From the IMG/VR virus record IMGVR_UViG_3300024265_000603, positions 1 to 16,315 of that record: a stretch of 16,315 nucleotides of DNA; one strand, written 5' to 3'. This document shows, piece by piece, positions 515-15,691 of the stretch. The translations under genes and the position numbers were made by a program. The notes under the pieces were generated by a model that did no database searches, was not told the origin of the DNA, and saw nothing but the letters and a program-made list of their open reading frames with translations. Each line of letters starts with the position of its first letter. Position 1 is the first letter of the stretch.

Positions 515-631
515 TTAAAAGAATATAAAATAAGGAATTTCTTTTGATGTTAAGACTATTATTAAACTAAATATAGCAAGGATAAGTAAAATTAAAACAA
601 TAATTAATCCTTCTAACTTTATATTATTCAT
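515..631 (-). CDS. 38-aa single-TM membrane peptide (MNNIKLEGLIIVLILLILAIFSLIIVLTSKEIPYFIFF)
   Basis: Hand-translated; ATGA overlap with the stop of the upstream ORF; hydrophobic; followed by a T-rich tract. Confidence 0.6.
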   Translation of the reverse strand: MNNIKLEGLIIVLILLILAIFSLIIVLTSKEIPYFIFF

Positions 632-813
632 AAGAAATATTCATATTCATTGTTATTATCTACACCATTACAGATACAAGTAAAATAAGTATAAACAAAA
701 TAATAAGGAAAAATAATACTTCTAAATATAAAATGTATATTTAAACTTAAAGGAAGTAAGAAGCTAACAAATAACCATAATATAAATATTATTTTTCTTG
801 TTATTATTTTCAT
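628..813 (-). CDS. Small membrane protein, 61 aa (MKIITRKIIF...)
   Basis: 3' part of track ORF 628..891; start moved to the ATG after the GTGAATAATATG junction motif. Confidence 0.55.
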   Translation of the reverse strand: MKIITRKIIFILWLFVSFLLPLSLNIHFIFRSIIFPYYFVYTYFTCICNGVDNNNEYEYFL

Positions 814-818
814 ATTAT

Positions 819-908
819 TCACATTCTTATAATGATATCTAATATTAATGTTGTAAATAAAGCTATAATTGATAATATTAATATAATACAATAATACTTT
901 TCTTTCAT
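819..908 (-). CDS. 29-aa membrane micropeptide (MKEKYYCIILILSIIALFTTLILDIIIRM), paralog of 2302..2394
   Basis: Hand-translated; junction motifs on both sides; clear similarity to 2302..2394. Confidence 0.65.
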   Translation of the reverse strand: MKEKYYCIILILSIIALFTTLILDIIIRM

Positions 909-909
909 A

Positions 910-1134
910 TCATTCACTTTTTAAGTAAGAAAAGAATTTATAGAAATCAATTATTTGATTTAAAGAATAAAGAAATTTTGTTTGATTTTGAATATATATA
1001 ATATATTTATCTCTTATTTTATTAATCTCTTTAATTTTTTGTTTGTTTGATAATTTATTATCATCTATTATTAAATAAGAATTAATAAGACAATCAAAAC
1101 CTTTTTTATAAAGTTTATATTTTTCTATACTCAT
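910..1134 (-). CDS. Hypothetical protein
   Basis: Track ORF 910..1143; ATG at 1134 preferred over GTG; ends KSE*. Confidence 0.7.
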   Translation of the reverse strand: MSIEKYKLYKKGFDCLINSYLIIDDNKLSNKQKIKEINKIRDKYIIYIQNQTKFLYSLNQIIDFYKFFSYLKSE

Positions 1135-1139
1135 ATCAT

Positions 1140-1352
1140 TCACTCTAAATAACTTATTTCTTTTACCTTATTATCTTTTAATATTTTTACTTGGTCATAA
1201 ATAAATATATCTGTAATACCTTTTAAGAAATGACTACTATTAATATATTTTCTAAATATCTTTATTGCTTTAAGAATATTTTTCGCTTTACATATTAATA
1301 CTATGCTATTATAAGATTCATTACAAATATTTTTTGTATAATAAGTTTTCAT
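1140..1352 (-). CDS. Hypothetical protein
   Basis: Track ORF 1140..1361; ATG after the junction motif. Confidence 0.7.
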   Translation of the reverse strand: MKTYYTKNICNESYNSIVLICKAKNILKAIKIFRKYINSSHFLKGITDIFIYDQVKILKDNKVKEISYLE

Positions 1353-1353
1353 A

Positions 1354-1533
1354 TTATTCACTTTTAATATGTGTAAAACTTGAAATATAAGGATAAGTAA
1401 AATATCCTTCTTTTAATGACATATTTAACCATTCTATTAAACATTTAATACATAGATTAGATGAGTTAAATATAAATCCTTTAATGTGAACATATTCATT
1501 TATTTCTTTTTTACATTCACTACATTTTGTCAT
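1354..1533 (-). CDS. Small C4 zinc-finger protein
   Basis: CSEC...CIKC; ends KSE*; track ORF 1354..1542. Confidence 0.7.
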   Translation of the reverse strand: MTKCSECKKEINEYVHIKGFIFNSSNLCIKCLIEWLNMSLKEGYFTYPYISSFTHIKSE

Positions 1534-1534
1534 A

Positions 1535-1750
1535 TCATTCACTTTTTAATTTGTTAATTCTCTTATATATTCTTTTATTAATTTGTATTAATAATAAGTC
1601 AATTAAGCCTAAAATAATTGTTGTTAAATGTATAGTTAATCCTTTAATTCCAGTTAAACTAATTATCCATAAAGGAATAATATAAATAAAAATTCCAAAA
1701 ATTAAATGATGTATTAAAAAGCTTAAAGTTTCTAATGTTTTAAGTTTCAT
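1535..1750 (-). CDS. Small two-TM membrane protein
   Basis: Two hydrophobic segments and a basic tail; ends KSE*; track ORF 1535..1759. Confidence 0.7.
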   Translation of the reverse strand: MKLKTLETLSFLIHHLIFGIFIYIIPLWIISLTGIKGLTIHLTTIILGLIDLLLIQINKRIYKRINKLKSE

Positions 1751-1755
1751 ATTAT

Positions 1756-1893
1756 TCACTTATATTCTATTTGATAACCACTAATTAAATCTTTTTTAAT
1801 TAATTCTTTACAAAATTTATCTATTTCACTATAGATTGATGTAAAAGGTTCACATTCTTTTAATTTAACAATAAAATCAACTTTATATGACAT
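1756..1893 (-). CDS. 45-aa hypothetical protein (MSYKVDFIVKLKECEP...)
   Basis: Hand-translated; exactly fills the gap between two junction motifs. Confidence 0.65.
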   Translation of the reverse strand: MSYKVDFIVKLKECEPFTSIYSEIDKFCKELIKKDLISGYQIEYK

Positions 1894-1894
1894 A

Positions 1895-2053
1895 TTATTC
1901 ACTTTTTATTAATTTCTCAAGTCTAAAAAGTACTTCTATAATAGATAAATAATAATTAGTTGATACTTTGATACTTCTAATCAAATTTTCATTTAATTTA
2001 TCTACTTTTGTTTCTATATCTTTTATTGTTTGTTCTATTCTATATATTTCCAT
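1895..2053 (-). CDS. 52-aa coiled-coil-like protein (MEIYRIEQTIKDIETKVDKLNENL...KSE)
   Basis: Hand-translated; junction motifs on both sides. Confidence 0.65.
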   Translation of the reverse strand: MEIYRIEQTIKDIETKVDKLNENLIRSIKVSTNYYLSIIEVLFRLEKLIKSE

Positions 2054-2061
2054 ATTATTCA

Positions 2062-2100
2062 CTTTTGGATAACTACGTTTTTGTAATTATCTTACAAAAG
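2062..2100 (-). promoter_or_regulatory. Bulged intergenic hairpin H1
   Basis: - strand CTTTTG-TAA-GATAATTAC-AAAAAC-GTAGTTATC-CAAAAG; one U.G wobble. Confidence 0.7.
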
Positions 2101-2110
2101 AAAAAATTAA

Positions 2111-2296
2111 TTATAATCTTATATCTACTCTTTCAATATCATTTAGATTAGTAATTAGATAAGTACCTAATTCAAAATAACTCATTTCTGATTCTTTATA
2201 ATTAATAGTATGATAATCTTTATCATATATTCTAACAAGAAACTTTTGTTCTTTACTAATCTCTAATGCTTGACCAATAATATCCTTTAATTCCAT
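2111..2296 (-). CDS. Hypothetical protein
   Basis: Track ORF 2111..2305; ATG after the junction motif. Confidence 0.7.
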   Translation of the reverse strand: MELKDIIGQALEISKEQKFLVRIYDKDYHTINYKESEMSYFELGTYLITNLNDIERVDIRL

Positions 2297-2301
2297 ATTA
2301 T

Positions 2302-2394
2302 TCACTTTCTTATGATTAAATCTATTATTATTGGTGTAAGAAAAGCAATAATTCCGTATATCAACACTAATATATAAAAGTATTTATCTTTCAT
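2302..2394 (-). CDS. 30-aa membrane micropeptide (MKDKYFYILVLIYGIIAFLTPIIIDLIIRK), paralog of 819..908
   Basis: Hand-translated; SD-like AAGGTG upstream; stop lies in the junction motif. Confidence 0.65.
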   Translation of the reverse strand: MKDKYFYILVLIYGIIAFLTPIIIDLIIRK

Positions 2395-2397
2395 ATC

Positions 2398-2670
2398 TTA
2401 CACCTTTTTATTTTCTGATTTCTTTTTATCATAGTTCAATTTAGCAATTCTTTCTATATCATAATATATTATTATAGCAGACATAATTATAATTCCACAC
2501 TTAATATAGAAAATTAAAGCTATTACAAAAATGCTTCTGAAATTCTTTACAAATAAACTTATAATAATAATATCTATAGCATTTATTATTATTATGCTAA
2601 ATAATGTTCTATGAAAAAGATTCCACCTTTCATTATTTAATTTAATTTTTTTAAATTGTAATTTTTTCAT
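2398..2670 (-). CDS. Two-TM membrane protein
   Basis: Track ORF 2398..2679; two hydrophobic stretches. Confidence 0.7.
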   Translation of the reverse strand: MKKLQFKKIKLNNERWNLFHRTLFSIIIINAIDIIIISLFVKNFRSIFVIALIFYIKCGIIIMSAIIIYYDIERIAKLNYDKKKSENKKV

Positions 2671-2678
2671 ATTATTCA

Positions 2679-2717
2679 CTTTTGGATAATTACGATTATG
2701 TAATTATCTTACAAAAG
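2679..2717 (-). promoter_or_regulatory. Bulged intergenic hairpin H2
   Basis: 6-bp lower stem, TAA bulge, perfect 9-bp GATAATTAC/GTAATTATC stem, 6-nt loop. Confidence 0.7.
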
Positions 2718-2723
2718 AAAATT

Positions 2724-3026
2724 TTAAATAATTATTGTATGATTAACTAAATTAATAGTATATATAGAATACCTTAATCTAATCAATAATGTAATTGCTT
2801 GAATTATTTCTTTATAGAATTCATCAAAATTAAGATGATTAGAAGGTATTTCTAAAGCTTCTTTACTCATTTCACCAATTTCCTCCATTATTATTACAAT
2901 CCACTTTTCAATAGTGTGAGTTTGATTAGGAAATTTTTTATCTTGAAATCTATATTCTTTCTCAATTTCTCTTAAAAATATTGATAATTTATTTTCTACA
3001 AAACTTTTCCAATTTTTATTTACCAT
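2724..3026 (-). CDS. MazG-like all-alpha nucleotide pyrophosphohydrolase
   Basis: E-x-x-x-Q-D-x-K-F, W-x-x-I-I-x-EEIGE-x-S-K-E and E-I-I-Q pattern typical of viral MazG-like proteins. Confidence 0.75.
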   Translation of the reverse strand: MVNKNWKSFVENKLSIFLREIEKEYRFQDKKFPNQTHTIEKWIVIIMEEIGEMSKEALEIPSNHLNFDEFYKEIIQAITLLIRLRYSIYTINLVNHTIII

Positions 3027-3037
3027 ATATTATTCAC

Positions 3038-3073
3038 TTTTGCTTAATCAGTAATTCTGATTAAGTATCAAAA
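3038..3073 (-). promoter_or_regulatory. Bulged intergenic hairpin H3
   Basis: TTTTG/CAAAA lower stem, 3-nt bulge, CTTAATCAG/CTGATTAAG stem, 5-nt loop. Confidence 0.7.
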
Positions 3074-3079
3074 ATAAAA

Positions 3080-3250
3080 TTATTTTCTATTGTATGGTTT
3101 AGTTCTTATTATTGTATCCACTACTAACTTAAATCTTTTACTAAATTCATAATGAATTATATCAAAATCAGAGTTATTTGGATTTGGTTTTAAATATAAG
3201 GTTAGTATTCTTTTATCTGTATTTACAATTACTTTATCAATTTCTTTCAT
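3080..3250 (-). CDS. 56-aa hypothetical protein (MKEIDKVIVNTDKRILTLYLKP...)
   Basis: Hand-translated; fills the gap between H3 and the upstream ORF. Confidence 0.6.
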   Translation of the reverse strand: MKEIDKVIVNTDKRILTLYLKPNPNNSDFDIIHYEFSKRFKLVVDTIIRTKPYNRK

Positions 3251-3252
3251 AT

Positions 3253-3519
3253 TTAATCAGTATCAGTCATTTTTATATTATTTAATTCATTATCTAAACT
3301 TTTAATTTTAATATTTGATATTGTTGTATCAATAGAAATTTGCTTTAATGTTAATTCATTAATAGCTTGTAATAATACAAGATTATTAAAACTGTGTAAT
3401 TCTCTTTTACTTAGACAATTTCTAAATTCTTGTATAAATAACTTTATAGTAGTAAAAGAAATATCTGGATAATTCATTAAAGTACTCTGAATCCAAATAA
3501 GAAATTTTTGTATTTTCAT
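3253..3519 (-). CDS. Hypothetical protein
   Basis: Track ORF; SD-like GAGGT and TAATG overlap with the upstream gene. Confidence 0.7.
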   Translation of the reverse strand: MKIQKFLIWIQSTLMNYPDISFTTIKLFIQEFRNCLSKRELHSFNNLVLLQAINELTLKQISIDTTISNIKIKSLDNELNNIKMTDTD

Positions 3520-3677
3520 TAATTTACCTCTGATTCTAATTTAAAGATTTTTACTATATAATTTCCTTTCGGTAAATTAAGTTCTTTTATATGGTTTGGA
3601 ATTCTAATTGTTAAATTTACCGGTGTATTATCTTTATATTTTTTCCAAATCCATTCAAATTTAAAGATTTCTTTCAT
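3519..3677 (-). CDS. 52-aa putative AbrB/SpoVT-like DNA-binding protein
   Basis: Hand-translated; LTIRIPNHIKELNLPKGNYIVKI resembles the AbrB swapped-hairpin pattern; junction motif upstream. Confidence 0.5.
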   Translation of the reverse strand: MKEIFKFEWIWKKYKDNTPVNLTIRIPNHIKELNLPKGNYIVKIFKLESEVN

Positions 3678-3686
3678 ATTATTCAC

Positions 3687-3722
3687 TTTTGCTTAATTAG
3701 TAATTCTAATTAAGTATCAAAA
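3687..3722 (-). promoter_or_regulatory. Bulged intergenic hairpin H4
   Basis: Same as H3 apart from a compensatory C-G to T-A change (CTTAATTAG/CTAATTAAG). Confidence 0.7.
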
Positions 3723-3728
3723 ATAAAA

Positions 3729-4160
3729 TTATTTAATTAATGAAACTATGTATACTTCAGCTTTACCTTTAAAGTTTGGTGTATCAATTTTAGCCATTGT
3801 TTTAGAAATTTGAATAATATGACCAATTAATTTTTCAAGTATTCCTTTAAAATGTTTTTGAATTAATACAGCCAATTGAAATTGAAAGCTTCTACCATTG
3901 GCATTAAATTGGTAAATGACATCATTCATTTCTAATAACATAGTATCATAAGTGTTTCCATCAGCAAATAAAGTCGGTGTAGGTAAAGAATGAACTTTTA
4001 CATTAAAAACATCAGAGACATTATCCCTTTCATTATAACTAACTTTTAATGTTGGTAATATATTAAGTTTTGAGACTTTATCCACTTTTTCCATTTCTAA
4101 ATTATCCATGAAGTTATAAACTTCTTTTTCTGTATCTTTTTCCTTTACCAAATTTTTCAC
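3729..4160 (-). CDS. Hypothetical protein, possible OB-fold ssDNA-binding protein
   Basis: 143-aa track ORF; beta-rich core ending in Y-x-V; lies near the replication genes; start uncertain (GTG 4160 or TTG 4151). Confidence 0.6.
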   Translation of the reverse strand: MKNLVKEKDTEKEVYNFMDNLEMEKVDKVSKLNILPTLKVSYNERDNVSDVFNVKVHSLPTPTLFADGNTYDTMLLEMNDVIYQFNANGRSFQFQLAVLIQKHFKGILEKLIGHIIQISKTMAKIDTPNFKGKAEVYIVSLIK

Positions 4161-4601: not shown

Positions 4602-4651
4602 AAAAAGTGAAAAATGTTCATTTTAAATTAAAAAAAGTGAAAATTGTTCAT
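4602..4651. repeat. Two 20-bp direct repeats with an internal TGAA-N5-TTCA dyad (operator-like)
   Basis: AAAAAGTGAAAAATGTTCAT (4602-4621) and AAAAAGTGAAAATTGTTCAT (4632-4651), 30-bp period. Confidence 0.6.
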
Positions 4652-4705
4652 AGACCAATTTTGTTAAAAGCTTTCCATCATTTTATAGCATATCAACTTT
4701 TTAAA

Positions 4706-5188
4706 ATGAAAAATATGGTTTCTAAAGAGCAAAAAATAAAGGAAATTAAAGTAATCATAGGTAATAATCCTTCTCTTAATTCAAGTGAAACACTCAGGTT
4801 AATACAATCAGAAGGTTTAGGAATCCGTAAACAAGAATTTCAAACTTTATTTAGAGAACAGAGACAATTACCAGAACCTACAAAAGAGAAAAAAGAAAAA
4901 TCTGTACCTATAAAGTTTAGAAAGGGAATAGGAATAACCCCTATTGATAAACCAGATAAACCAAAAAAGGAGGGTCAATATGGAGTTATTGAAGTAATTG
5001 ATAATAAAGGAAATAGTTTTTGGATAAAGTATCAGAATAAAAAAGATTTTAATAGGCAATTAGAAAAAATTAAATCAAAATATTCTGTTAAAAAATTAAA
5101 ACTTGTTTCTCATGGCTTTAGAAATTATGTAGATTTCATTGATAAAGAGTTTAGGGAAATCTTAGAAACCGAGGGTATTATTTCATAA
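4706..5188 (+). CDS. Basic protein upstream of pPolB; candidate terminal protein or DNA-binding protein
   Basis: Track ORF 4607..5188, but its first 33 codons cover the regulatory repeats, so ATG 4706 or 4715 is preferred; S-x-x-x-L-R...GLGIRKQ helical motif. Confidence 0.7.
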   Translation: MKNMVSKEQKIKEIKVIIGNNPSLNSSETLRLIQSEGLGIRKQEFQTLFREQRQLPEPTKEKKEKSVPIKFRKGIGITPIDKPDKPKKEGQYGVIEVIDNKGNSFWIKYQNKKDFNRQLEKIKSKYSVKKLKLVSHGFRNYVDFIDKEFREILETEGIIS

Positions 5189-7125
5189 AAAATAATTTTC
5201 ATGAATTTAGAAAGAATAAGAAGTTAAAGATTCAATCTAATTTCATTTTTGTTGATACTGAAAGTTTCTCTAATAAGAATATTCCTAATAAAGAAATCTT
5301 AACCTTTAAAGTAGGTTGCTTAATTACATGGAATAAAGAAAGTAATGAAATAAATAAAAATACTTTTTATGATGTAAAAGATTATTGGAAAACTGTAGAA
5401 AAGTGTTTTTCTAAGGATAAAAGAAATCTTATTATGTTTGCTCACAATACTCAATTTGATTTTCTTATGTTAGATGGCTTTAACCAATTATTACATAATG
5501 GATGGCAATTAAAAAGCCATTATGTAAAAAGCAAAACTTTTATTCTTGTATTTAAAAAATTATGTATAGATAATAAATATTATACCTTACATATTTGGGA
5601 TACTATGAATTATGTACCGGAATCATTAGATAAAATTGGCATATCTGTTGGTTATCCTAAATTATCTATAGATTTTGATAAAGTTTCAGATAAAGAACTT
5701 GAAATATATTGTATGAGAGATACAGAAATTATATATGAATTTATTAAAAAATTAATTAATTTCTTAGAAGTTAATGATTTAAGTAGACTAAAAGCTACTT
5801 CTGGAAGTTTATCTTTTAATACTTTTAGACATAAATTCTATAAACCAGAAACACATAAGATTTATATTCATGATTGGAAAAGAGCAATAAAGTTAGAACG
5901 TGAAAGTTATAAAGGTGGAATTACTGATTGTTTTAAAATAGGTACTCATAAAGATTTGTATAAACTTGATATTAATTCTATGTATCCATCAATAATGAGA
6001 AAATCTTTATTACCTATAAAATTATTATTTAGTTCGCATGAATCTAATTATTCTCAAAAAGATTTATTCAAAATATATAAATTAAGTGTGAAAAAAGGTT
6101 ATGGCTGTATAATAAAAGCAACAATTAATCTTAATTATAACAATCCTTATATTCTACATAATTTTGGTACTGGTAAAGCTTTATTTAGTTATGGTACATT
6201 TAAAGTAAGTATTTGTCAACCAGAAATAGATTTTATTATGAAATATGGAAAAATATTAACTATTCATGAGATTAATGTGTATAAAATGAAAGTTATTTTT
6301 AAGGATTTTGTTGATTTCTTTTATAAAATAAAAACTGATTCTCAAAAAAATAATGATAAAATTACCACCAGATTTGCTAAACTTATGCTTAATACTCAAT
6401 ATGGTAAATGGGGTCAAAGACAACTTGACTACATGAGTTTAGATATTACACATAAATTTATGATTGAATTTCAAGAAGTAATTAAACTTATGATAATTAA
6501 AATGAAAGAAAAATTACCTAATTTCAATTTAAGTAAAGATATAGTTTATTTAGGGTCAATTATTAATGAGGGTGAACTTTATATAGTAAATGGTAAATTA
6601 TATTTACTGAAACAAACAAACAGTAATGCTAAAGATTCTTTTGTTGCCATAGCTTCTTTTATTACATCATATTCAAGAATGTTATTAATAGACTATTTAA
6701 AAATAGCTAAAAGAAAAAATGTCTTTTATGTTGATACTGATTCTTTATTTGTAAATCAATCTGGATATAATAATCTTGAAAAAGATGATTGTATTAATGA
6801 ATTTGGATTAGGAAAGTTAAAACTTGAAGAAACTGGTGTAGGAAGCTTCTACGCACCTAAATTCTATGATTTTAATGATAATCGTAAAATTAAAGGTATT
6901 AATCAAAAATCATCTATTATTCTACTTGAAAATAATAAGAAAGTAGTTTATCAAGTTCATTTATGGAAAAAATTTAAATCAAACCTTAAAGATGGATATA
7001 AACCAGAACAAGAAATCCAAACAACAACAAAAGAAAGTAAAAAATATTATGATAAGGGTAAAATAGATGATTTTAATAATGTAATACCTTTCTCTGTTAG
7101 AGAAATTGAACTTATGATTAAATAA
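5185..7125 (+). CDS. polB: Protein-primed family B DNA polymerase (~646 aa if initiated at ATA 5185)
   Basis: ExoI FVDTE (5248-5262), ExoII AHNTQFD, ExoIII YCMRD, SYKGG, PolA LDINSMYP, PolB KLMLNTQYGKWG, PolC YVDTDS, KGI; frame open from 5155; the first ATG (5434) would delete ExoI; start position is inferred. Confidence 0.95.
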   Translation: MKNNFHEFRKNKKLKIQSNFIFVDTESFSNKNIPNKEILTFKVGCLITWNKESNEINKNTFYDVKDYWKTVEKCFSKDKRNLIMFAHNTQFDFLMLDGFNQLLHNGWQLKSHYVKSKTFILVFKKLCIDNKYYTLHIWDTMNYVPESLDKIGISVGYPKLSIDFDKVSDKELEIYCMRDTEIIYEFIKKLINFLEVNDLSRLKATSGSLSFNTFRHKFYKPETHKIYIHDWKRAIKLERESYKGGITDCFKIGTHKDLYKLDINSMYPSIMRKSLLPIKLLFSSHESNYSQKDLFKIYKLSVKKGYGCIIKATINLNYNNPYILHNFGTGKALFSYGTFKVSICQPEIDFIMKYGKILTIHEINVYKMKVIFKDFVDFFYKIKTDSQKNNDKITTRFAKLMLNTQYGKWGQRQLDYMSLDITHKFMIEFQEVIKLMIIKMKEKLPNFNLSKDIVYLGSIINEGELYIVNGKLYLLKQTNSNAKDSFVAIASFITSYSRMLLIDYLKIAKRKNVFYVDTDSLFVNQSGYNNLEKDDCINEFGLGKLKLEETGVGSFYAPKFYDFNDNRKIKGINQKSSIILLENNKKVVYQVHLWKKFKSNLKDGYKPEQEIQTTTKESKKYYDKGKIDDFNNVIPFSVREIELMIK

Positions 7126-7151
7126 AAGATATTTTTTAAAAAAATTTCAGT

Positions 7152-7166
7152 AAAAAACTTTAAAAG
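7152..7166 (+). promoter_or_regulatory. Putative BRE/TATA promoter for the capsid and structural genes
   Basis: AAAAAAC-TTTAAAAG in the polB-MCP intergenic gap; SD-like AAGTTGA at 7217-7223. Confidence 0.5.
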
Positions 7167-7229
7167 TGAACATATCTTATTATTAATTAACTTTACCTAA
7201 AAATTTTTCATTTAAAAAGTTGATTTTTC

Positions 7230-7472
7230 ATGGCAAATGACATAAAAAGGGTAATTTTAATTGCTGTTGCTTTAATGGTAATTGGTGTTATTATCCCTAT
7301 TGCTGTTGGTTTAGTTGCGAATGCGGGAAATGTAGTGGTTAATTCTACGAGTGGTGAGAGATTGTCTGCTATAGCAGACCCTTCTGTTGTACTAATGATT
7401 GAAGTCTTGATTCCTATAATTGCTGTAATTGCTATTGTTTTAATGTTTTTACCAAGTAAAACTGGTACTTAA
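7230..7472 (+). CDS. Major capsid protein, spindle-shaped virus type (His1 major capsid protein/SSV1 VP1-like helical hairpin)
   Basis: 80 aa; two long hydrophobic helices (...VIGVIIPIA... and ...VLIPIIAVIAIVL) joined by a loop with an N-S-T sequon; own promoter and terminator; first gene of the structural block. Confidence 0.8.
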   Translation: MANDIKRVILIAVALMVIGVIIPIAVGLVANAGNVVVNSTSGERLSAIADPSVVLMIEVLIPIIAVIAIVLMFLPSKTGT

Positions 7473-7504
7473 TAAACCAGTATTTACTATTTTTTTATTT
7501 TTTT
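7461..7504 (+). terminator. Putative terminator after the capsid gene
   Basis: ACTGGT/ACCAGT inverted repeat followed by oligo-T tracts at about 7490-7504. Confidence 0.55.
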
Positions 7505-7510
7505 ATTAAG

Positions 7511-7681
7511 GTGGTTAAGATAACAGAAAATAAAAAACTAACACCACACCAAAAAGCTATTAAAGTAAATTCTGAAAAAGAAGCTAATTTAGTTAATAAA
7601 GAATTAATCTATATTATTAAAGCCATGTTATTATCTTTTCTATTTATGACATTCATAATTATATTGATTAGAGGTTTTTAA
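7511..7681 (+). CDS. Small protein with a C-terminal TM helix (start GTG 7511 or ATA 7520)
   Basis: Hand-translated ...ITENKKLTPHQKAIKVNSEKEANLVNKELIYIIKAMLLSFLFMTFIIILIRGF; TAATG overlap with the next gene. Confidence 0.65.
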   Translation: MVKITENKKLTPHQKAIKVNSEKEANLVNKELIYIIKAMLLSFLFMTFIIILIRGF

Positions 7682-10600
7682 TGAAAAAATTTAAAAGTTC
7701 TTTAGTTCTATTATTTGTTTTAATTGTTTTTACCTTATCAAGTATTCCTTTAAATGTAAAAGGAGTTTTACCAGATTCCATAGACTATACGTTTGCTAAT
7801 AATAATTTATATGATACAACTAAACCAATTTTCAATGAATCTACTAATGTGAATGTTAGAGATGTAAGTGAATATACTCAATTTTATAATGCCACTTTTG
7901 ATTTTAATAATGAAATAGTTGGTACAAATGGAACAAACATAGACTTTATAGATTTAGCCACTATTGGTGTAGATACTACAATTCAAATAATCTCATTATT
8001 GAACGGACATAGGAAAGTCTTAGAGTTAAATGATAATGATGTAGGGGCAGAAGTTATAGGACAAAATACATTTGATTCTACTCGATTATTTGGTACTATT
8101 GAGCTTTTTATTCGAAATACGGATACATCTCTAAGAACAGATATTTTAATTAGAAGTGGTATTACTAATGCTTTACAAGTTGCGATAGCAGGAAATACAG
8201 CAAATCAACTTCAATATTTTGATGGTATTTGGAATAATATTGTTTCAATTATAGATAATATTTGGTATCATATTAGAATAGATTTTGAGTGTGGTGCTGA
8301 TGGTTATGAAAGTCTCGCACCAGATACATTTCATATTTATGTTAATGGAATAAAGTATTCTGATTTATCTTTTAGGAATACTGTATCAACTGTTAATAAT
8401 TTAAGACTTCAAACAAATGTAGGGAATAGTGGTTATTTTACCTATTTTGATGCTATTGGTTATAGTTGGTTTAAACCAAATTATAATTTTACTAATGATG
8501 TTATTGGAAGTTTTCCAGAGTTTTGGATAAATAATGATGATTTTCCAAATATGACAACTGTTATAGCTTCTTTAGATGGTAATACTAAAGTAATGGAAAT
8601 GAATGATTTTACCAGAGACGGTACAACTTCCAGTAGTCTTTCTTTTAATAGGAATCAAGATGGCTTTATTCAATTTCTTATAGCAAAAGATAATTTATCT
8701 AATGATGCCCATGGAAGGTTTAGATTTCAAGAAGGTAATAATGAAAGAATGAGATTTAGTTTTATTGGTGCTGATTTATATTACCTTCACGCAAATACAA
8801 GTACCGAATTATTTGTTAGTAATGCTTTAAGTTTAATAAATACTTTTACTGATTTTAAATTTGTTTTAGATGATACTAATAATGAAGTGGATTTATATAT
8901 TGATGATATTCTTAAACAGTCTAATGTAAATTATTTTACTAACACAGTAGATACAATTAATAAAATAACTATTCAAACCGTAGAAGCTTCAGTACCAGAT
9001 TCAATTTATAGAATGTTTTTTGATGATTTTGATTTTAATCATTTAACCATAAATACCTCAATTAATAATATTATACCTCACATTGAAACTAATCCTTTTT
9101 TAAAAGAAGTGGATACATTTACTTTCGATTTAGTTTCTGCTAACACCCTTTATGATATAGGTACTGATAATCCTTCTGGTTGGTCTGATGTAGAAAATGG
9201 TTTTGACCATACTAATATAGCGCAAGATAATACAGATATACCTTCAGGAAGTAGAACTAATAACAGAGTAGTTCAAATTGAAGGTGTTGGTTCTGATAAT
9301 GCTATTAGTGGAATAGAAAAAGATTTTAATATTTCAAGTGGAATTTTTAATATTACAATGAAATATAATTATAGTTTAAATAATAATGATTTAGGAAGTT
9401 TTATTATTTCTATTTTTACTCAAAATTTACAATTACAAGTAAAAATTAATTGTACTTTTGTAAATGCTATATTTGGTAACCAACTTGATTATAGAAATTC
9501 AAGTTTTAAAAATGTAGAATTAATTCCATTTTTAGATTCTACTATTGCTATAAACCAAGAAGTTAGTTATAATATATACATAGATTCTTTTGTTGTATTT
9601 AGAGCAACAACAGAAGGAAGTTTAGGATTCCATTCTTATAATTTTACTTTTCCTTTAATAAATCCAGATTCTTTTGGTTTAGGTAAAATAATGATTATTT
9701 CTGACCCTACAAATGTAGGTGGTACATTTCAAACAATAGAGCTTAAAGAAGTAGGTGTTTATCATAACGGAATTTCTTTATCTGATGATTTTGGTTATTT
9801 ACCTTCAGTAATTTCTGATAATGCTTCTTTCTTTTGGCAATTTTTAGCACATAATTTAATAACAATAGAAGTTTTAGGTAATATGGCAATTCATGCCACT
9901 TCTTTTAATGAGTGGATATTAGGTGGTAATATGGAAGTTATAAGTAATATGGACACTTTTAATTTAACTCAGAGAATAATTAATGTTTATTTTCAAGATT
10001 TTGTTCATTTTGGCTTTTTAGGTATCCCTACACCTATGATTGTATTTTTTATTACTTCTCAATTTAATTTAACAAGTATAAGTATTAATGGAATAAAGTT
10101 TTCTGATGATACCCCTCACGATTTTGGTTTTCTTGCTTATGAATCTGGTGGTGTAGATAATAATGTAAGTTATTTCTTTTTAGATTCAAGTAATACATTA
10201 AAATATTTTCATACTACTGATGATAATAATGTAAATGAATTTATTCAGGCTGAGTTAGTTATTGGTGGTTTAGACACTAATAATACAGCAATACAGTTTA
10301 ATTCTAATAAAGATAATAATGCCTTTGGTTTTTTCAGAGTAAGTTATGTATCAACATCAACTATATTTAAAATACAATCAATTTTTAAAACTACTATATC
10401 TATATTACCTAATTCTAAATCTATTATTTCATATATAATTTTAATAACTGATAATAATGATAATACTGTTTCTGGTTTAACAACTGGTTTTGTTTCTAAT
10501 ATTAAATTATTATTTACTGAACAACAAATAGTTTCTGTAATTACATTTTCTTTATTATCTGTTTTAATTCCTTTAATTATTATATTAATACCAAGTTTAG

Positions 10601-10764
10601 CATTAAGAATGACAATTGGTAAATTTGCTTTTATTCCATCTTTTATATTAATGACAATTATTTCCATTATAAGTGGCTTAATACCAACTTGGTTATTTTT
10701 TGTAATTATGTTATCAAGTTCGTTATTTATATTTAATGAAAAAGATAATAGAGTTGATATATAA
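7681..10764 (+). CDS. Large membrane-anchored adhesin/receptor-binding glycoprotein with tandem lectin (LamG/ConA)-like domains
   Basis: N-terminal signal peptide; beta-rich body with WYHIRIDF...FHIYVNG; ~19 N-x-S/T sequons counted by eye; three C-terminal TM segments. Confidence 0.8.
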   Translation: MKKFKSSLVLLFVLIVFTLSSIPLNVKGVLPDSIDYTFANNNLYDTTKPIFNESTNVNVRDVSEYTQFYNATFDFNNEIVGTNGTNIDFIDLATIGVDTTIQIISLLNGHRKVLELNDNDVGAEVIGQNTFDSTRLFGTIELFIRNTDTSLRTDILIRSGITNALQVAIAGNTANQLQYFDGIWNNIVSIIDNIWYHIRIDFECGADGYESLAPDTFHIYVNGIKYSDLSFRNTVSTVNNLRLQTNVGNSGYFTYFDAIGYSWFKPNYNFTNDVIGSFPEFWINNDDFPNMTTVIASLDGNTKVMEMNDFTRDGTTSSSLSFNRNQDGFIQFLIAKDNLSNDAHGRFRFQEGNNERMRFSFIGADLYYLHANTSTELFVSNALSLINTFTDFKFVLDDTNNEVDLYIDDILKQSNVNYFTNTVDTINKITIQTVEASVPDSIYRMFFDDFDFNHLTINTSINNIIPHIETNPFLKEVDTFTFDLVSANTLYDIGTDNPSGWSDVENGFDHTNIAQDNTDIPSGSRTNNRVVQIEGVGSDNAISGIEKDFNISSGIFNITMKYNYSLNNNDLGSFIISIFTQNLQLQVKINCTFVNAIFGNQLDYRNSSFKNVELIPFLDSTIAINQEVSYNIYIDSFVVFRATTEGSLGFHSYNFTFPLINPDSFGLGKIMIISDPTNVGGTFQTIELKEVGVYHNGISLSDDFGYLPSVISDNASFFWQFLAHNLITIEVLGNMAIHATSFNEWILGGNMEVISNMDTFNLTQRIINVYFQDFVHFGFLGIPTPMIVFFITSQFNLTSISINGIKFSDDTPHDFGFLAYESGGVDNNVSYFFLDSSNTLKYFHTTDDNNVNEFIQAELVIGGLDTNNTAIQFNSNKDNNAFGFFRVSYVSTSTIFKIQSIFKTTISILPNSKSIISYIILITDNNDNTVSGLTTGFVSNIKLLFTEQQIVSVITFSLLSVLIPLIIILIPSLALRMTIGKFAFIPSFILMTIISIISGLIPTWLFFVIMLSSSLFIFNEKDNRVDI

Positions 10765-10991
10765 TTCCAACAGAAATAGATTGGTTAATAGGTTTATCTT
10801 TAATGTTTGCTTTAGCTTTATTATTAACTTCAATGACTTATCAAAATATAGAAACATTTTTTATATTTCTAAATATATTTGCTGGTTTTATGGTTTGGTC
10901 AGGTTTAATAGAGCTATGGGTATTAGTACTTACTACAATTGTTTTGGTTTTTATTATTGGTAATAATGTATATAAAAAAAGAGGTTTTTAA
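10761..10991 (+). CDS. Small multi-TM virion/morphogenesis membrane protein
   Basis: Track ORF 10803..10991; frame is open upstream to ATA 10761, which follows SD-like GAGTTGA. Confidence 0.75.
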   Translation: MIPTEIDWLIGLSLMFALALLLTSMTYQNIETFFIFLNIFAGFMVWSGLIELWVLVLTTIVLVFIIGNNVYKKRGF

Positions 10992-10994
10992 AAA

Positions 10995-11444
10995 ATGCTT
11001 ATAGGATTAAGTTTATTTGTAATAATTATATTAGGTTTTCTTTCCATTATGTTGGGAAGTGAGTATTTAGCTAATACTATAAATGTTGGAATTGATAACA
11101 CTTCACTTGTAAATGGTTCAATTACTACTTATGTTGTAGAAACAGAAACAGTTTTATTTGAAATAGATACTTCTGTTTTTATTGTTGCGGGAATTGCTTT
11201 ATTGATAACTGTTGCCATTGTTGCGGGAATTACTGGAATTCAAGTTTTGGGTTCTGGTTTAAACAGTGAAAGTGTTAAAATAATAATTATGATAACAGCT
11301 TTTACAGGAATTTGGATTACTCTGTCAATAATAGCTATTAATTTAATTTCCAGTATAGCTATTTTTGGAAGTATTATTTATATAGGATTAACACTAATGT
11401 ATGTAATTGGTGTAGTACAGAAATTAACTGGAGGTGGTGGATAA
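10995..11444 (+). CDS. Multi-TM membrane protein (putative minor virion protein)
   Basis: About four hydrophobic segments; NTS and NGS sequons; SD GAGGT. Confidence 0.85.
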   Translation: MLIGLSLFVIIILGFLSIMLGSEYLANTINVGIDNTSLVNGSITTYVVETETVLFEIDTSVFIVAGIALLITVAIVAGITGIQVLGSGLNSESVKIIIMITAFTGIWITLSIIAINLISSIAIFGSIIYIGLTLMYVIGVVQKLTGGGG

Positions 11445-11777
11445 ATGATTGATTTCTTACAAGCAGAACCATTTCCACCAACAGATATAGAAGCTGTAGC
11501 AATAACTAATATAGGTTTAATGTATGCTCATATATTTATTTTGATTTTTTTATTACTATTAATGTTATTTTTATATTTAAAATCATCAAAAGAATTAAAG
11601 GAAGGTTTACCAATATTAGTAATATATCTGTTTTCATTATTAATTGGAATAAAAAGTTTTGAGCATCCACATACACCATTTAGCCCTTTACTTGAATCAT
11701 TTTTTCTAATATTTCAAACAGTTATATTCTTATTAACAGCTTTTAATGTATATGATAATAAAATGAAAAGTAGATAA
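11445..11777 (+). CDS. Three-TM membrane protein
   Basis: Hydrophobic; SD GGAGGTGG; abuts the upstream stop. Confidence 0.85.
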   Translation: MIDFLQAEPFPPTDIEAVAITNIGLMYAHIFILIFLLLLMLFLYLKSSKELKEGLPILVIYLFSLLIGIKSFEHPHTPFSPLLESFFLIFQTVIFLLTAFNVYDNKMKSR

Positions 11778-11780
11778 ACT

Positions 11781-12182
11781 ATGTTTAATAAAAAGAAAAG
11801 ATATTTGGCAATTTTTTTAATAAAAGAACAAAATTCTTTTACCATTGTTGGAAAAAAATTATTTAATCCTAATAATCCAGAGATTAGTTATAGTGGTAAA
11901 GCTTATATTATTAAAACAGATAAATCTACTTATTCAAAAGGATTAACTCAATTTTATTTCTTAATAAAAGATACTAAACAACAACTATTATTTAGTAAAC
12001 ACGAGAAATCTGATTTAATAGATACGGCTTTAGTGGATTCTATATTATCGAAAAAGATAATCAAACAATTAACTTCAGATTTAGGTAATACAGATTATCG
12101 GTCAATTATCTTTTATTTGATAATAGGATTAACTATTGGTGGTTTAATAGGTTTTATAATTGGTAAAGGTGGTTTTGGATAA
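11781..12182 (+). CDS. Protein with a C-terminal TM anchor (morphogenesis module)
   Basis: Soluble N-terminal domain plus a Gly-rich C-terminal hydrophobic helix. Confidence 0.85.
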   Translation: MFNKKKRYLAIFLIKEQNSFTIVGKKLFNPNNPEISYSGKAYIIKTDKSTYSKGLTQFYFLIKDTKQQLLFSKHEKSDLIDTALVDSILSKKIIKQLTSDLGNTDYRSIIFYLIIGLTIGGLIGFIIGKGGFG

Positions 12183-12539
12183 ATGTCAATTGAAAATGAA
12201 CTTCCAGATTTACTTTCTAATCCTTTAAGTGAATTATCCAGAGATAAAAATATTACTTTACAACAAATATTAAATAATCTATTAGACGGAAGTAAAGACT
12301 TAGAGTTAAAGACACATATATTTAAACCTAAAGCTTTAAGTGGATTAAAGATAATTGCTGATGCTTTAATGAGTAAAGGGTATAAAACTTCCGCAAATCA
12401 TATTCTAAATTATATTGATACTTATCTTAAATACATGGTTAGTTATCAGAGAAAAAGTAGAACCGAAATAATTAAAGCTTTTACTATGTCAAGCAGAAAA
12501 GAAGTAATGGATAACGATTTTACAAAAAGTTTGGATTAA
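12183..12539 (+). CDS. Hypothetical helical protein preceding the ATPase
   Basis: Track ORF; coupled to both neighbours. Confidence 0.85.
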   Translation: MSIENELPDLLSNPLSELSRDKNITLQQILNNLLDGSKDLELKTHIFKPKALSGLKIIADALMSKGYKTSANHILNYIDTYLKYMVSYQRKSRTEIIKAFTMSSRKEVMDNDFTKSLD

Positions 12540-13231
12540 TGTTAGTAATTATACTTGGCAATTTAGGGAGCGGTAAAACTTATATTATGATGTTATTAGC
12601 TTATCAAGATAAAAGACAAATATTATCTAATTTTAATATAAAAAGAAAGAATGTAAAGGTAATTGATGTACCAGATTTACTTGATTTACCAGATGATATA
12701 GTTTTATTAATGGATGAAGCTTATAGTTGGATTGAATCCAGAAGTAGTCTTGATTCATTGAATAAATATTTATCAAGTGTTTTATTCCATATTAGAAAAA
12801 CCAATACTGATATTTATATTACTACACCAATGTATTCTACAATAGATAAAAGGTTTCGAAATCAGGCTAATTATATAATTTTTTGTAAACATAGAAATAA
12901 TTTTGAATCTGATGATTTTCATTTTTTATTCTATGATGTAAATAATAGAACTTATGGAATTAGTACACTAAAGTATTCTGAAGCTAAAAAATACTTTCAT
13001 TTATATGATACTAATGAAAAAGTAGAATCATACAAGAAAAGAGGTTTACAATTCAATATCTTAAAAAAATATCCAGAAAGAATGAAAGAATATATAAAAC
13101 AAATATCAAAATTAGCAAATAAACAATTAAATGGTAATATTACTCACGACAGAGTAAAGAAATTTCTATTTGATAATGGAATTGATTTAGGTTTTCATTC
13201 ATTTCTATATATAGATTTAAAAGGTAATTAA
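12539..13231 (+). CDS. P-loop morphogenesis/extrusion ATPase (Zot/inovirus pI-like, as in spindle-shaped viruses)
   Basis: Walker A GNLGSGKT at the N-terminus, Walker B LLMDEA, HIRK and IDKRFR motifs. Confidence 0.88.
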   Translation: MLVIILGNLGSGKTYIMMLLAYQDKRQILSNFNIKRKNVKVIDVPDLLDLPDDIVLLMDEAYSWIESRSSLDSLNKYLSSVLFHIRKTNTDIYITTPMYSTIDKRFRNQANYIIFCKHRNNFESDDFHFLFYDVNNRTYGISTLKYSEAKKYFHLYDTNEKVESYKKRGLQFNILKKYPERMKEYIKQISKLANKQLNGNITHDRVKKFLFDNGIDLGFHSFLYIDLKGN

Positions 13232-13406: not shown

Positions 13407-14202
13407 ACTAAAAAGAATTTTTGCTTCGGTTAGATATTCATTAATGTTTAAAACAATGAAATATATAACACCAATAATGTATGAAAAGTTTATTATCTTA
13501 AATAATATCTGGAAAAGTAAAAATCATATTGGTGGCAAATTAGATAATGTAAATAGAATTCCAAGACCAGCAATATTATTTATAAAAAAATATTTTAAAG
13601 ATAAACTAATTACTGGATTAGAATTAGGTGTTAAATTAGGTAAAAATTCTGAAAGTATTCTAAAAGAGTTAAATATTCAAACTCTTTATCTGATTGATGC
13701 TTGGGATGATTATGTTGCGAATGAAATAACTAAAGAAGGGCAAAAAAGACATTACTTACTTACATTGAAAAAATTTAAAGATGATAATAGAGTAAAAATA
13801 ATAAAGGGTTTTTCCGAAAATATTGTTCATAGATTTGATAATGAGAGTTTGGATTTTGTATATATTGACGGAAATCATAGTTATGATTTTGTTTATCAAG
13901 ATATAACTATATGGAGTAAAAAAGTAAAACAAAATGGAATTATATCTGGTCACGATATTTTTAATTTTAATGATGTATTATCAGCTGTTAAGAAGTGGAG
14001 TATAAAAAATCAATATAATTTCTTTATAAAACCACCAGATTGGTATATTATAAAGAAAGATATTATTACTTGTAAAGAATGTAGTTATTGTAATAAAGAA
14101 TTAGATATATGTACTTATGAAAGTATTGAGAAATTATCAAATAAAAATCTTGAAATTTGTATTTGTTTTATGCCAATAATGAATTATAATATAAGAAAAT
14201 GA
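13387..14202 (+). CDS. Class I SAM-dependent methyltransferase (Methyltransf_24-like) with a Cys-rich C-terminal tail
   Basis: GLELGVKLG, LYLIDAW, LDFVYIDGNHSY and GIISGHD motifs; CKECSYC...C...CIC tail; start 13387 or 13396. Confidence 0.88.
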   Translation: MVNMKNKLKRIFASVRYSLMFKTMKYITPIMYEKFIILNNIWKSKNHIGGKLDNVNRIPRPAILFIKKYFKDKLITGLELGVKLGKNSESILKELNIQTLYLIDAWDDYVANEITKEGQKRHYLLTLKKFKDDNRVKIIKGFSENIVHRFDNESLDFVYIDGNHSYDFVYQDITIWSKKVKQNGIISGHDIFNFNDVLSAVKKWSIKNQYNFFIKPPDWYIIKKDIITCKECSYCNKELDICTYESIEKLSNKNLEICICFMPIMNYNIRK

Positions 14203-14834: not shown

Positions 14835-14931
14835 AAATAATAATTGATTCCTTAGAATAAGAATTTACTCATTATACTAAATAAGAGAAAAAAGTTCCAT
14901 AATTTTAAAATAAAAGAAAAAGAAAAAATAT

Positions 14932-15111
14932 TTAATAGTATTTAAAAGAATTAATCAAACAAATGTTCATTCTTGAAAAATCAAATTTATCTATTAATCT
15001 TTTTGAAGGTTCTTTACCTACATTACCTTTTACAACATATTGATAATTTATTAATTCATTACCTAAATAATCTTTCATGTATAAAGTTATTAATTTTATT
15101 TTATCAAACAT
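14932..15111 (-). CDS. Hypothetical protein
   Basis: Track ORF 14932..15120; ATG after AAAAGTGAAAACT; followed by a T-rich tract. Confidence 0.6.
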   Translation of the reverse strand: MFDKIKLITLYMKDYLGNELINYQYVVKGNVGKEPSKRLIDKFDFSRMNICLINSFKYY

Positions 15112-15116
15112 AGTTT

Positions 15117-15317
15117 TCACTTTTGGTTTATTTTTATTATTATAGATTTAGGAATCCAAATATTTTGTTTAACAGAATGGTGTACAGCTATTACAGGGTG
15201 TAGTTTAAAATGAATAGCTTTATTAGTTTCTTTTATAATATTTCCATCTAAACAATTAGGATTTCTCATAAGATTATTCTTTTTTAGAAACCATTCTGGT
15301 AAATAAATACTTATCAT
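15117..15317 (-). CDS. Small beta-rich viral protein (IIKETxKA...WIPKS family)
   Basis: Motif recalled from small phage and archaeal-virus hypothetical proteins; SD-like GAGTTGA. Confidence 0.75.
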   Translation of the reverse strand: MISIYLPEWFLKKNNLMRNPNCLDGNIIKETNKAIHFKLHPVIAVHHSVKQNIWIPKSIIIKINQK

Positions 15318-15332
15318 TTTTAATCAACTCTA

Positions 15333-15367
15333 TTTGGTTATTTAGGATTATCTAAATAACTTTCAAA
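15333..15367 (-). promoter_or_regulatory. Bulged intergenic hairpin H6
   Basis: TTTG/CAAA lower stem, 3-nt bulge, GTTATTTAG/CTAAATAAC stem, 6-nt loop. Confidence 0.7.
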
Positions 15368-15375
15368 AAGAAAAA

Positions 15376-15645
15376 TTAAAATATGTAATAACCTTCTTTA
15401 AATGCTTTATCAATAGATTCTTTATTATCTTTATACACATTTTCACATTCTAAAGAACAAAAATCAGATTTAGGTAATATTTTAAAAGTACTTCCACAGG
15501 CTTTACATTCTCTATGTTCTTTACACAGTCTAATAGAAATAATACCTCTACTCTCAAGATAATTAGTAAGATTATTACATCCATAAACAGAACATAAATC
15601 ATTTTTTAGAACTTTTTTAGGTGGTATAATATTATTATATGTCAT
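15376..15645 (-). CDS. Double zinc-finger protein
   Basis: CSVYGC...CKEH followed by CKAC...FCSLEC; track ORF 15376..15654. Confidence 0.75.
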   Translation of the reverse strand: MTYNNIIPPKKVLKNDLCSVYGCNNLTNYLESRGIISIRLCKEHRECKACGSTFKILPKSDFCSLECENVYKDNKESIDKAFKEGYYIF

Positions 15646-15654
15646 AGTTTTCAC

Positions 15655-15691
15655 TTTTGGTTATTTAGGTTTGTCTAAATAACTTTCAAAA
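15655..15691 (-). promoter_or_regulatory. Bulged intergenic hairpin H7
   Basis: Same upper stem as H6 with a different loop. Confidence 0.7.

Follow-up and report, generated by a model that had tools for sequence, protein, structure and literature searches.

In the 16,315-nt genome of WyrdV3, a spindle-shaped virus assigned to Asgard archaea, three genes probably begin not at the start codons currently called for them but by Shine-Dalgarno (SD)-guided, termination-coupled initiation at AUA-type codons. These are a small membrane-protein gene that follows the adhesin gene, the gene of the protein-primed DNA polymerase (pPolB), and a small gene with a candidate start at ATA 7520; the case for all three rests on sequence comparison with related viruses. 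The stretch of DNA analysed, referred to here as the window, is IMG/VR record IMGVR_UViG_3300024265_000603 over its full length. Contig Ga0209976_10001089, named WyrdV3 by Medvedeva et al. ('Viruses of Asgard archaea', bioRxiv 10.1101/2021.07.29.453957), matches the whole window at 100% and represents a complete linear genome. A sequence-only reading of the window had proposed that AUA-type initiation recurs in this virus and is missed by gene callers, and our results support this proposal for the three genes named and reveal the pattern across the virus clade.

The junction between the adhesin gene and the small membrane-protein gene comprises the following features:

10762-10764, plus strand: TAA, the adhesin stop, which ends the 1027-aa open reading frame (ORF) 7681-10764.
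10751..10757, plus strand: GAGTTGA, an SD-like word and a degenerate version of the GAGGT(T/G)GA, AAGGTGA or GAGGTA found at the same place in relatives.
10761..10763, plus strand: ATA, a candidate non-canonical start with a two-base overlap with the adhesin stop (ATAA), 14 codons upstream of ATG 10803 and in frame with it.
10764..10766, plus strand: ATT, an alternative candidate start, the next codon after ATA 10761 and 6 nt after GAGTTGA.
10803..10805, plus strand: ATG, the currently called start, more likely an internal, invariant Met of transmembrane (TM) helix 1.
10761..10991, plus strand: the gene as redrawn, encoding a membrane protein of 76 aa with three helices and opening the conserved five-gene set between adhesin and ATPase; the redrawing is based on the ratio of nonsynonymous to synonymous change (pN/pS), the family alignment, an AlphaFold2 (AF2) model and hydropathy.

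The frame of the small gene opens after TGA 10755-10757, and the SD-like word lies within the last codons of the adhesin. The codons from 10761 to 10802, IIPTEIDWLIGLSL, include no ATG, GTG or TTG, and a canonical restart codon is missing all the way from the opening of the frame to 10803. Intergenic gaps on the plus strand between 7511 and 14599 range from -20 to +3 nt, with the 38 nt before ATG 10803 as the sole exception. Both ATA 10761 and ATT 10764 fall inside the 5-9 nt range of SD spacing, and comparable words occur elsewhere in the window, with GAGTTGA 6 nt before the minus-strand ATG 15317 and AAGTTGA 6 nt before the capsid ATG 7230. The sequence-only reading had pointed to the positions of the stop, the ATA and GAGTTGA, to the gap as the only large one in a tight operon, and to these additional SD-like words, all of which we confirmed in the sequence. 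Ordinary ATGA and TAATG junctions are also present in the window, at 14199, 7681 and 12539. Other ORFs covering the junction were rejected: the overlapping ORF 10736-10963 in the +2 frame contains stops in relatives, and the antisense ORFs (10723-10857) are interrupted in most lineages.

The comparison covered 14 junctions, that of the window and 13 further ones (L001/L003, L004-L006, L008-L011, L016, L017, L019, L021 and L022), obtained from independent assemblies (IMG/VR, JGI, ENA and Logan) with the neighbouring 149-aa protein, the extended protein and the polymerase as queries. A search of viral contigs with the 62-aa protein alone returned no related loci, and the GenBank phage collection gave no match. 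In the family alignment (A4, extended with L019, L021 and L022), 14/14 lineages keep the codons ahead of the internal Met open, in frame and conserved as protein, with a nearly invariant W-x-I-G-L-S-L core. Homologs that start at the equivalent of Met 10803 and leave the extension unconserved, which the sequence-only reading had named as the outcome that would refute it, were not found. Over its last nine codons, in the seven lineages without ATG, GTG or TTG there, the extension has a pN/pS of 0.23 at a pS of 0.53, compared with 0.445 for the gene body and 0.65 and 1.65 for two control frames in the same lineages, and its serine codons interchange between TCT, AGC and AGT. Given this frame-specific pN/pS and the serine codon switching, the 38-nt "gap" is therefore coding sequence under purifying selection.

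The start column itself shows the interchange of ATA with canonical codons for which the sequence-only reading had suggested aligning homologs. ATA occupies the column in six lineages (the window, L004, L008, L009, L010 and L011), ATG is found in L016/L020 and, two codons later, in L022, and TTG is found in L006, L019 and L021 and, five codons earlier, in L017. The column of ATT 10764 holds ATT, ATC or ATA in all seven lineages of the IIPT clade. An SD of the GAGGT type precedes the start column by 5-8 nt in the relatives, yet encodes different adhesin residues from lineage to lineage (EV, GV, RG); L008 has an accidental in-frame ATG inside its SD, and L010 has the same ATG followed by TGA. 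Resolution in the tree of the neighbouring 149-aa protein is insufficient for counting how often the ATA state arose; in it, L005, which carries TTA, is sister with full support to the TTG-bearing L006 and L019, and the canonical start of L005 was therefore lost independently.

All of these data come from metagenome assemblies, some of them at low coverage (L010, L011 and L014 at 2.5-4x), and the ATA sites might be assembly or sequencing errors, or belong to defective variants with dead start codons. We consider this highly improbable, because the same state recurs in independent assemblies from all four sources, including the 44x contig L022, and persists over a synonymous divergence of ~0.5-0.6 under purifying selection.

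The extension also makes structural sense of the protein, as hydropathy and the structural model agree with the earlier claim that it completes the first TM helix. The Kyte-Doolittle peak of the N-terminal region over 19 residues reaches 1.95 with the extension and 1.14 without it, and the uncharged run measures 20 aa versus 13 aa. The AF2 model built from the family alignment (pLDDT 86.6) predicts helices at residues 7-25, 30-47 and 52-73, the first of which spans the join and takes 8 of its 19 residues from the extension. As a separate observation, the sequence LIGLSL within the extension (10782-10799) reappears in the next gene (10995), which opens with M-LIGLSL (10998-11015), the motif standing directly after its ATG; the N-terminal helices of these two neighbouring membrane proteins may be paralogous.

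A comparable arrangement is found at the start of the polymerase gene:

5185..7125, plus strand: the pPolB gene as redrawn (PF03175), with the ExoI motif FVDTES upstream of the first canonical start.
5185..5187, plus strand: ATA at the pPolB start column, overlapping TAA 5186-5188 of the upstream terminal-protein-like gene (ATAA).
5171..5176, plus strand: GAGGGT, an SD-like word 8 nt before ATA 5185, whose counterpart in L012-L015 is AAGGT or GAGGGTG, 7-8 nt before the start column.

The encoded protein matches Pfam PF03175 with an E-value of 7e-31. Its frame is open from 5155, and the first ATG, GTG or TTG occurs at 5434, leaving 83 conserved codons between ATA 5185 and Met 5434 that contain the ExoI motif. 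Homologs start with M-K-N-N-F-H-E-F-R-K exactly where the window reads I-K-N-N-F-H-E-F-R-K, and most of the 334 polymerase homologs are 635-660 aa long. The junction carries TTG in L016 and L017, an ordinary ATGA overlap in L024, and ATAA in the window, L012, L013, L015 and L022, so that ATA 5185 aligns with TTG or ATG of homologs. None of the six polymerases of the window clade (63-100% identical) has a usable canonical start before ExoI, except for a Leu-TTG 13 codons into L022. The upstream 82 codons show a pN/pS of 0.37 at a pS of 0.57, compared with 0.33 for the next 200 codons. A related observation is that 83-93 codons at the front of the polymerase are free of in-frame ATG, GTG and TTG in five lineages (window 5155-5434 and L012-L015), with p ~0.08-0.1 for one sequence, perhaps because internal starts are avoided behind a weak start codon.

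Both sets of extensions bear on whether the existing annotation, with starts at ATG 10803, 5434 and GTG 7511, is correct and the upstream conservation belongs to an element acting as RNA or DNA, for example a structure or a ribosome standby site. Met 10803 is invariant in 14/14 lineages, a weak AGGT lies 9 nt upstream of ATG 10803, and canonical start codons are those that archaeal ribosomes are known to use. We nevertheless find this explanation improbable, because the substitutions are frame-specific and protein-like (pN/pS 0.23 versus 0.65 and 1.65), and the extension lies behind a canonical start in at least five lineages. Moreover, helix 1 would be reduced to a stub of 11-13 residues, and a polymerase starting from 5434 would be without its ExoI motif, which is conserved and subject to purifying selection. 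The Met shows the same invariance in lineages where it is unable to be the start, namely L006, L016, L017, L019, L021 and L022 with their canonical starts upstream, and its conservation is therefore uninformative on initiation.

The downstream genes might instead be joined to the upstream ones by a programmed frameshift or stop readthrough, giving a fusion of adhesin and small membrane protein and another of the polymerase with the protein encoded before it. At both ATAA junctions of the window the downstream gene is in the -1 frame, and fusions of terminal protein and polymerase exist in other protein-primed systems. However, six lineages have the small gene in frame -1 with respect to the adhesin, L008 and L010 have it in frame +1, and L006 has it in frame 0; therefore no single frameshift or readthrough fits. 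In several lineages the permissive window spans no more than 1-2 codons, the last sense codons before the polymerase junction vary (TCA, ATA, CTG, TTA) and do not allow re-pairing after a -1 slip, and a slippery heptamer is absent at the pPolB junction. Such fusion is accordingly a very remote prospect.

The third gene lies between the capsid and adhesin genes, away from any overlapping stop:

7520..7681, plus strand: a small TM-protein gene with candidate start ATA 7520, identified by alignment with the ATG of relatives.
7508..7514, plus strand: AAGGTGG, an SD that contains the GTG 7511 taken as start by ORF finders.

ATA 7520 follows AAGGTGG at a distance of 5 nt (6 nt from AAGGTG), and the window sequence ATA-ACA-GAA-AAT aligns with ATG-ACA-GAA-AAT in L009, ATG-ACT-GAA-AAT in L016 and ATG-ATT-GAG-AAT in L014. 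The spacing of 6 nt is the same for AAGGTG before ATA 7520 in the window and TAGGAG before the ATG in L009. This site had been listed as a third candidate, behind AGGTGG, and the canonical ATG of three relatives in its column upholds that choice; GTG 7511 is part of the SD. In L022 (ENA ERZ25073594 NODE_1782, 6846-9311), a separate small gene between capsid and adhesin is absent, and a homolog of the 7520 gene, recognizable by its K-T-E-N motif, is apparently fused to the front of the adhesin and called from TTG 6852.

A blind all-against-all screen, aimed at conservation ahead of the first canonical start, yielded a further instance. In L015 (JGI 3300028835, Ga0310069_106654), the first of two capsid copies (3360-3629) has no canonical start before TM1. 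It carries ATC 3384, 7 nt after GAGGT, where its paralog has TTG and the window has ATG, and it is called as 67 aa.

These sites are relevant to the idea that reading is resumed without a true start codon, whereby a ribosome or its small subunit slips back one base after the UAA and continues at the NUA or the next codon, so that the position of the stop is what matters. The codon over the stop does vary, being ATA, CTA (L001), TTA (L005) or GTA (pPolB of L014), and any -1-frame codon over TAA is necessarily NTA. The bacterial ribosome recycling factor RRF is not known from archaea. When RRF is inactivated in Escherichia coli, ribosomes resume downstream reading in all frames (PMC9955659). However, ATA 7520 and the capsid ATC of L015 are intergenic, behind an SD and with no stop from which to restart, and in L008 and L010 the adhesin stop comes 17 nt after the ATA. 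An SD that is conserved and keeps its distance also favours start-site selection by the small subunit. We therefore regard restart of this kind as unlikely, and prefer SD-guided initiation at AUA-type codons.

Several observations weigh against this preferred explanation. ATAA ends 8 of the 15 plus-strand genes in the window, and a random stretch of 14 codons of this composition stays open with p ~0.26; the pattern at 10761 in a single sequence is at chance level and draws its significance only from comparison with relatives. GAGTTGA is the weakest SD of the family, and ATT 10764 fits the 6-nt spacing seen at the other GAGTTGA and AAGTTGA sites (15317, 7230) equally well. The first Ile of the conserved I-I-P-T would be expected to be encoded by ATA 43% of the time in any case, and the overlap with TAA fixes the last two bases of its codon in four lineages. 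The small-gene start column reads CTA in L001/L003 and TTA, overlapping TAG, in L005, and the pPolB column reads GTA (GTAA) in L014, so what is tolerated may extend to all NUA codons, or be set by the neighbouring stop, rather than being specific to AUA. In every case an ATT, ATC or ATA stands next to the column. In addition, the invariant internal Met leaves room for some initiation at 10803, and an in-frame GTG (7511) lies three codons upstream of ATA 7520. Experiments in E. coli point the same way: AUA, AUC, AUU and CUG starts reach 1-2% of AUG in reporters (bioRxiv 10.1101/063800), and replacing AUGA by aUAA at a coupled junction left no translation of the downstream ORF (PMC9955659). The latter reporter has the same four-base ATAA junction as the viral genes and differs from them in lacking an SD for the downstream ORF; if the wyrdvirus ATAA junctions work, either the archaeal host would differ from E. 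coli or the SD would rescue initiation.

Against these points stands what the alignments contain: the extensions are conserved coding sequence, canonical starts are absent (none occurs between 5155 and 5434 in the polymerase frame), ATA is aligned with ATG or TTG, the SD motif and its spacing are kept, and a uniform fusion is excluded. From this combination we infer initiation at AUA and its coupling to termination; the first amino acid may be Met or Ile. The stop/start overlap is present at 10761-10764 and 5185-5188, and is absent at 7520, which is intergenic, and in L008 and L010, where the adhesin stop lies 17 nt downstream of the ATA.

We propose the following course of events. The small gene would start ~42 nt upstream of ATG 10803, at ATA 10761 or the adjacent ATT 10764, with the ribosome placed by the SD-like word inside the last codons of the adhesin. 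This would most likely be the ribosome that terminated a moment earlier at the overlapping TAA (termination-reinitiation), and its product would be the three-helix membrane protein of 76 aa. The same arrangement would apply to pPolB, with ATA 5185 over the upstream TAA, and to the ATA 7520 gene. Such junctions may have originated under strong A+T pressure (23% G+C) by G-to-A mutation of ATGA or of NTG-type start/stop junctions. One G-to-A change turns ATGA into ATAA, converting ATG into ATA while keeping the stop (TGA to TAA), and the host initiation machinery would tolerate the change. The weak start may also keep these products scarce.

The closest known counterpart is termination-reinitiation at ATGA and TGATG junctions in archaea and bacteria (Huber et al. 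2019, PMC6728339), which shares with the viral junctions a co-directional gene pair, common stop and start bases, an embedded SD and a packed operon. The difference lies in the restart codon, which is ATA here (CTA, TTA or GTA in relatives) rather than ATG, GTG or TTG. Surveys of coupled junctions look for canonical starts only, leaving the ATAA-type class uncounted.

Near-cognate starts are a second point of reference. In E. coli, infC and pcnB use AUU as start codon. Rare prokaryotic starts of this type resemble the present ones in placing an AUH codon behind an SD at normal spacing, in being missed by gene callers and in plausibly serving to keep expression low. Here, by contrast, several genes of one small genome are concerned, including an essential replication enzyme, and the state is kept over deep divergence and in an Asgard host. 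Animal mitochondria use AUA as an initiation codon, with a modified C34 in tRNA-Met. They are similar in combining an AUA start with a very A+T-rich genome and tolerance at the third position, and they differ in that AUA there also specifies Met in elongation. Within genes of the window AUA clearly encodes Ile: it accounts for 5% of codons and aligns with Ile in homologs. Ribosome profiling of Haloferax volcanii detected candidate near-cognate initiation sites, which were left unpursued (PMC7261190), and the literature searched yielded no start-codon data for Asgard archaea.

A more general possibility, which we put forward tentatively, is that Asgard (Lokiarchaeia-like) hosts have a relaxed start rule, under which the small subunit and initiator tRNA would read NUA like NUG behind an SD or after termination. 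If so, A+T pressure could convert ATGA and TTG starts to ATAA and TTA without loss of essential genes, and if the rule is general, many Asgard genes would be mis-annotated at their 5' ends. A tRNA gene was sought in the window and none was found; a virus-encoded initiator is therefore excluded.

These results correct the annotation of a published Asgard virus genome and its relatives, for which public databases hold truncated versions (62 aa and 563 aa). The polymerase grows from 563 to 646 aa and recovers its ExoI motif, and a conserved protein of the morphogenesis module regains its first TM helix. Recurrence of the pattern in several genes and lineages, together with its stability in evolution, suggests that start-codon selection, or the handling of ribosomes after termination, is different in Asgard archaea. 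Asgard archaea are the archaea closest to eukaryotes, and their translation machinery is relevant to how that of eukaryotes arose. In very A+T-rich metagenomes of archaea and viruses, genes with junctions of this type may be shortened systematically by gene callers. The sites described here offer concrete positions for testing, as Lokiarchaeial cultures and a first cultured virus of a Lokiarchaeon exist.

The WyrdV3 genome is already published, and it is the start-codon behaviour, as a variant of near-cognate initiation and termination-reinitiation, that is new. The window has inverted termini of 324 nt that are 98% complementary, a G+C content of 23%, and the following additional features:

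7230-7472, plus strand: His1-like capsid protein, 80 aa, with two hydrophobic segments (ORF list).
7681..10764, plus strand: adhesin, 1027 aa, with C-terminal TM segments (ORF list), syntenic in L001, L009, L016, L017 and L022.
10761-12539: five-gene block of small membrane-protein genes between adhesin and ATPase (ORF list).

The ATPase, encoded by ORF 12539-13231, is pI/Zot-like and matches Zot PF05707 with an E-value of 1.6e-7. The window thus carries the features that characterize wyrdviruses, namely terminal inverted repeats, a protein-primed PolB, a His1-like capsid protein, a large adhesin, the five-gene block and a pI/Zot-like ATPase, in agreement with the description of the group (bioRxiv 10.1101/2021.07.29.453957). 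That paper makes no mention of start codons (0 occurrences), and the redrawn gene starts are new annotation. Among the relatives, L021 (JAFCEM010000071.1) represents a more G+C-rich version of the gene block on a 2.9-kb contig binned in a metagenome-assembled genome (MAG) of Candidatus Aenigmatarchaeota, and some polymerase homologs are labelled as Lokiarchaeota, Hermodarchaeota or Thermoplasmatota MAGs; the host range of the virus group, or the binning, is broader than Lokiarchaeia.

Apart from the L015 capsid, the matches of the blind screen were artefacts. Some were alternative frames of conserved DNA. The signal at a 118-aa gene in L004 and L006 reflects overlap with the end of the upstream gene. 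The match ahead of the terminal-protein-like gene corresponds to a non-coding element that is conserved; the start of that gene is ATG 4715 (or 4706) rather than GTG 4607. This element of ~40 nt (window 4646-4687), which starts with GTTCATAGACC, is conserved in L013, L014 and L022 and is probably a promoter or operator.

On the minus strand, nearly all small genes (800-4160 and 14930-15660) are preceded by AAAAGTGAATAATATG (GTGA, 5 nt, ATG). The GTG starts listed for these genes were rejected, since the in-frame GTG is part of the SD in this motif. In the gene that ends at 3729, TTG (4151) takes the place of the ATG of the motif. A frameshift suspected near 908 was likewise rejected, as the region contains two short genes, each behind its own SD motif. 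The 87-aa ORF called from TTG (628-891; window 628-908, minus strand) consists of a gene of 31 aa from ATG 908 and a gene of 61 aa from ATG 813, each behind GTGAAT(G/A)ATATG, with the TGA of the first inside the motif of the second (ATGTGAATAATATG).

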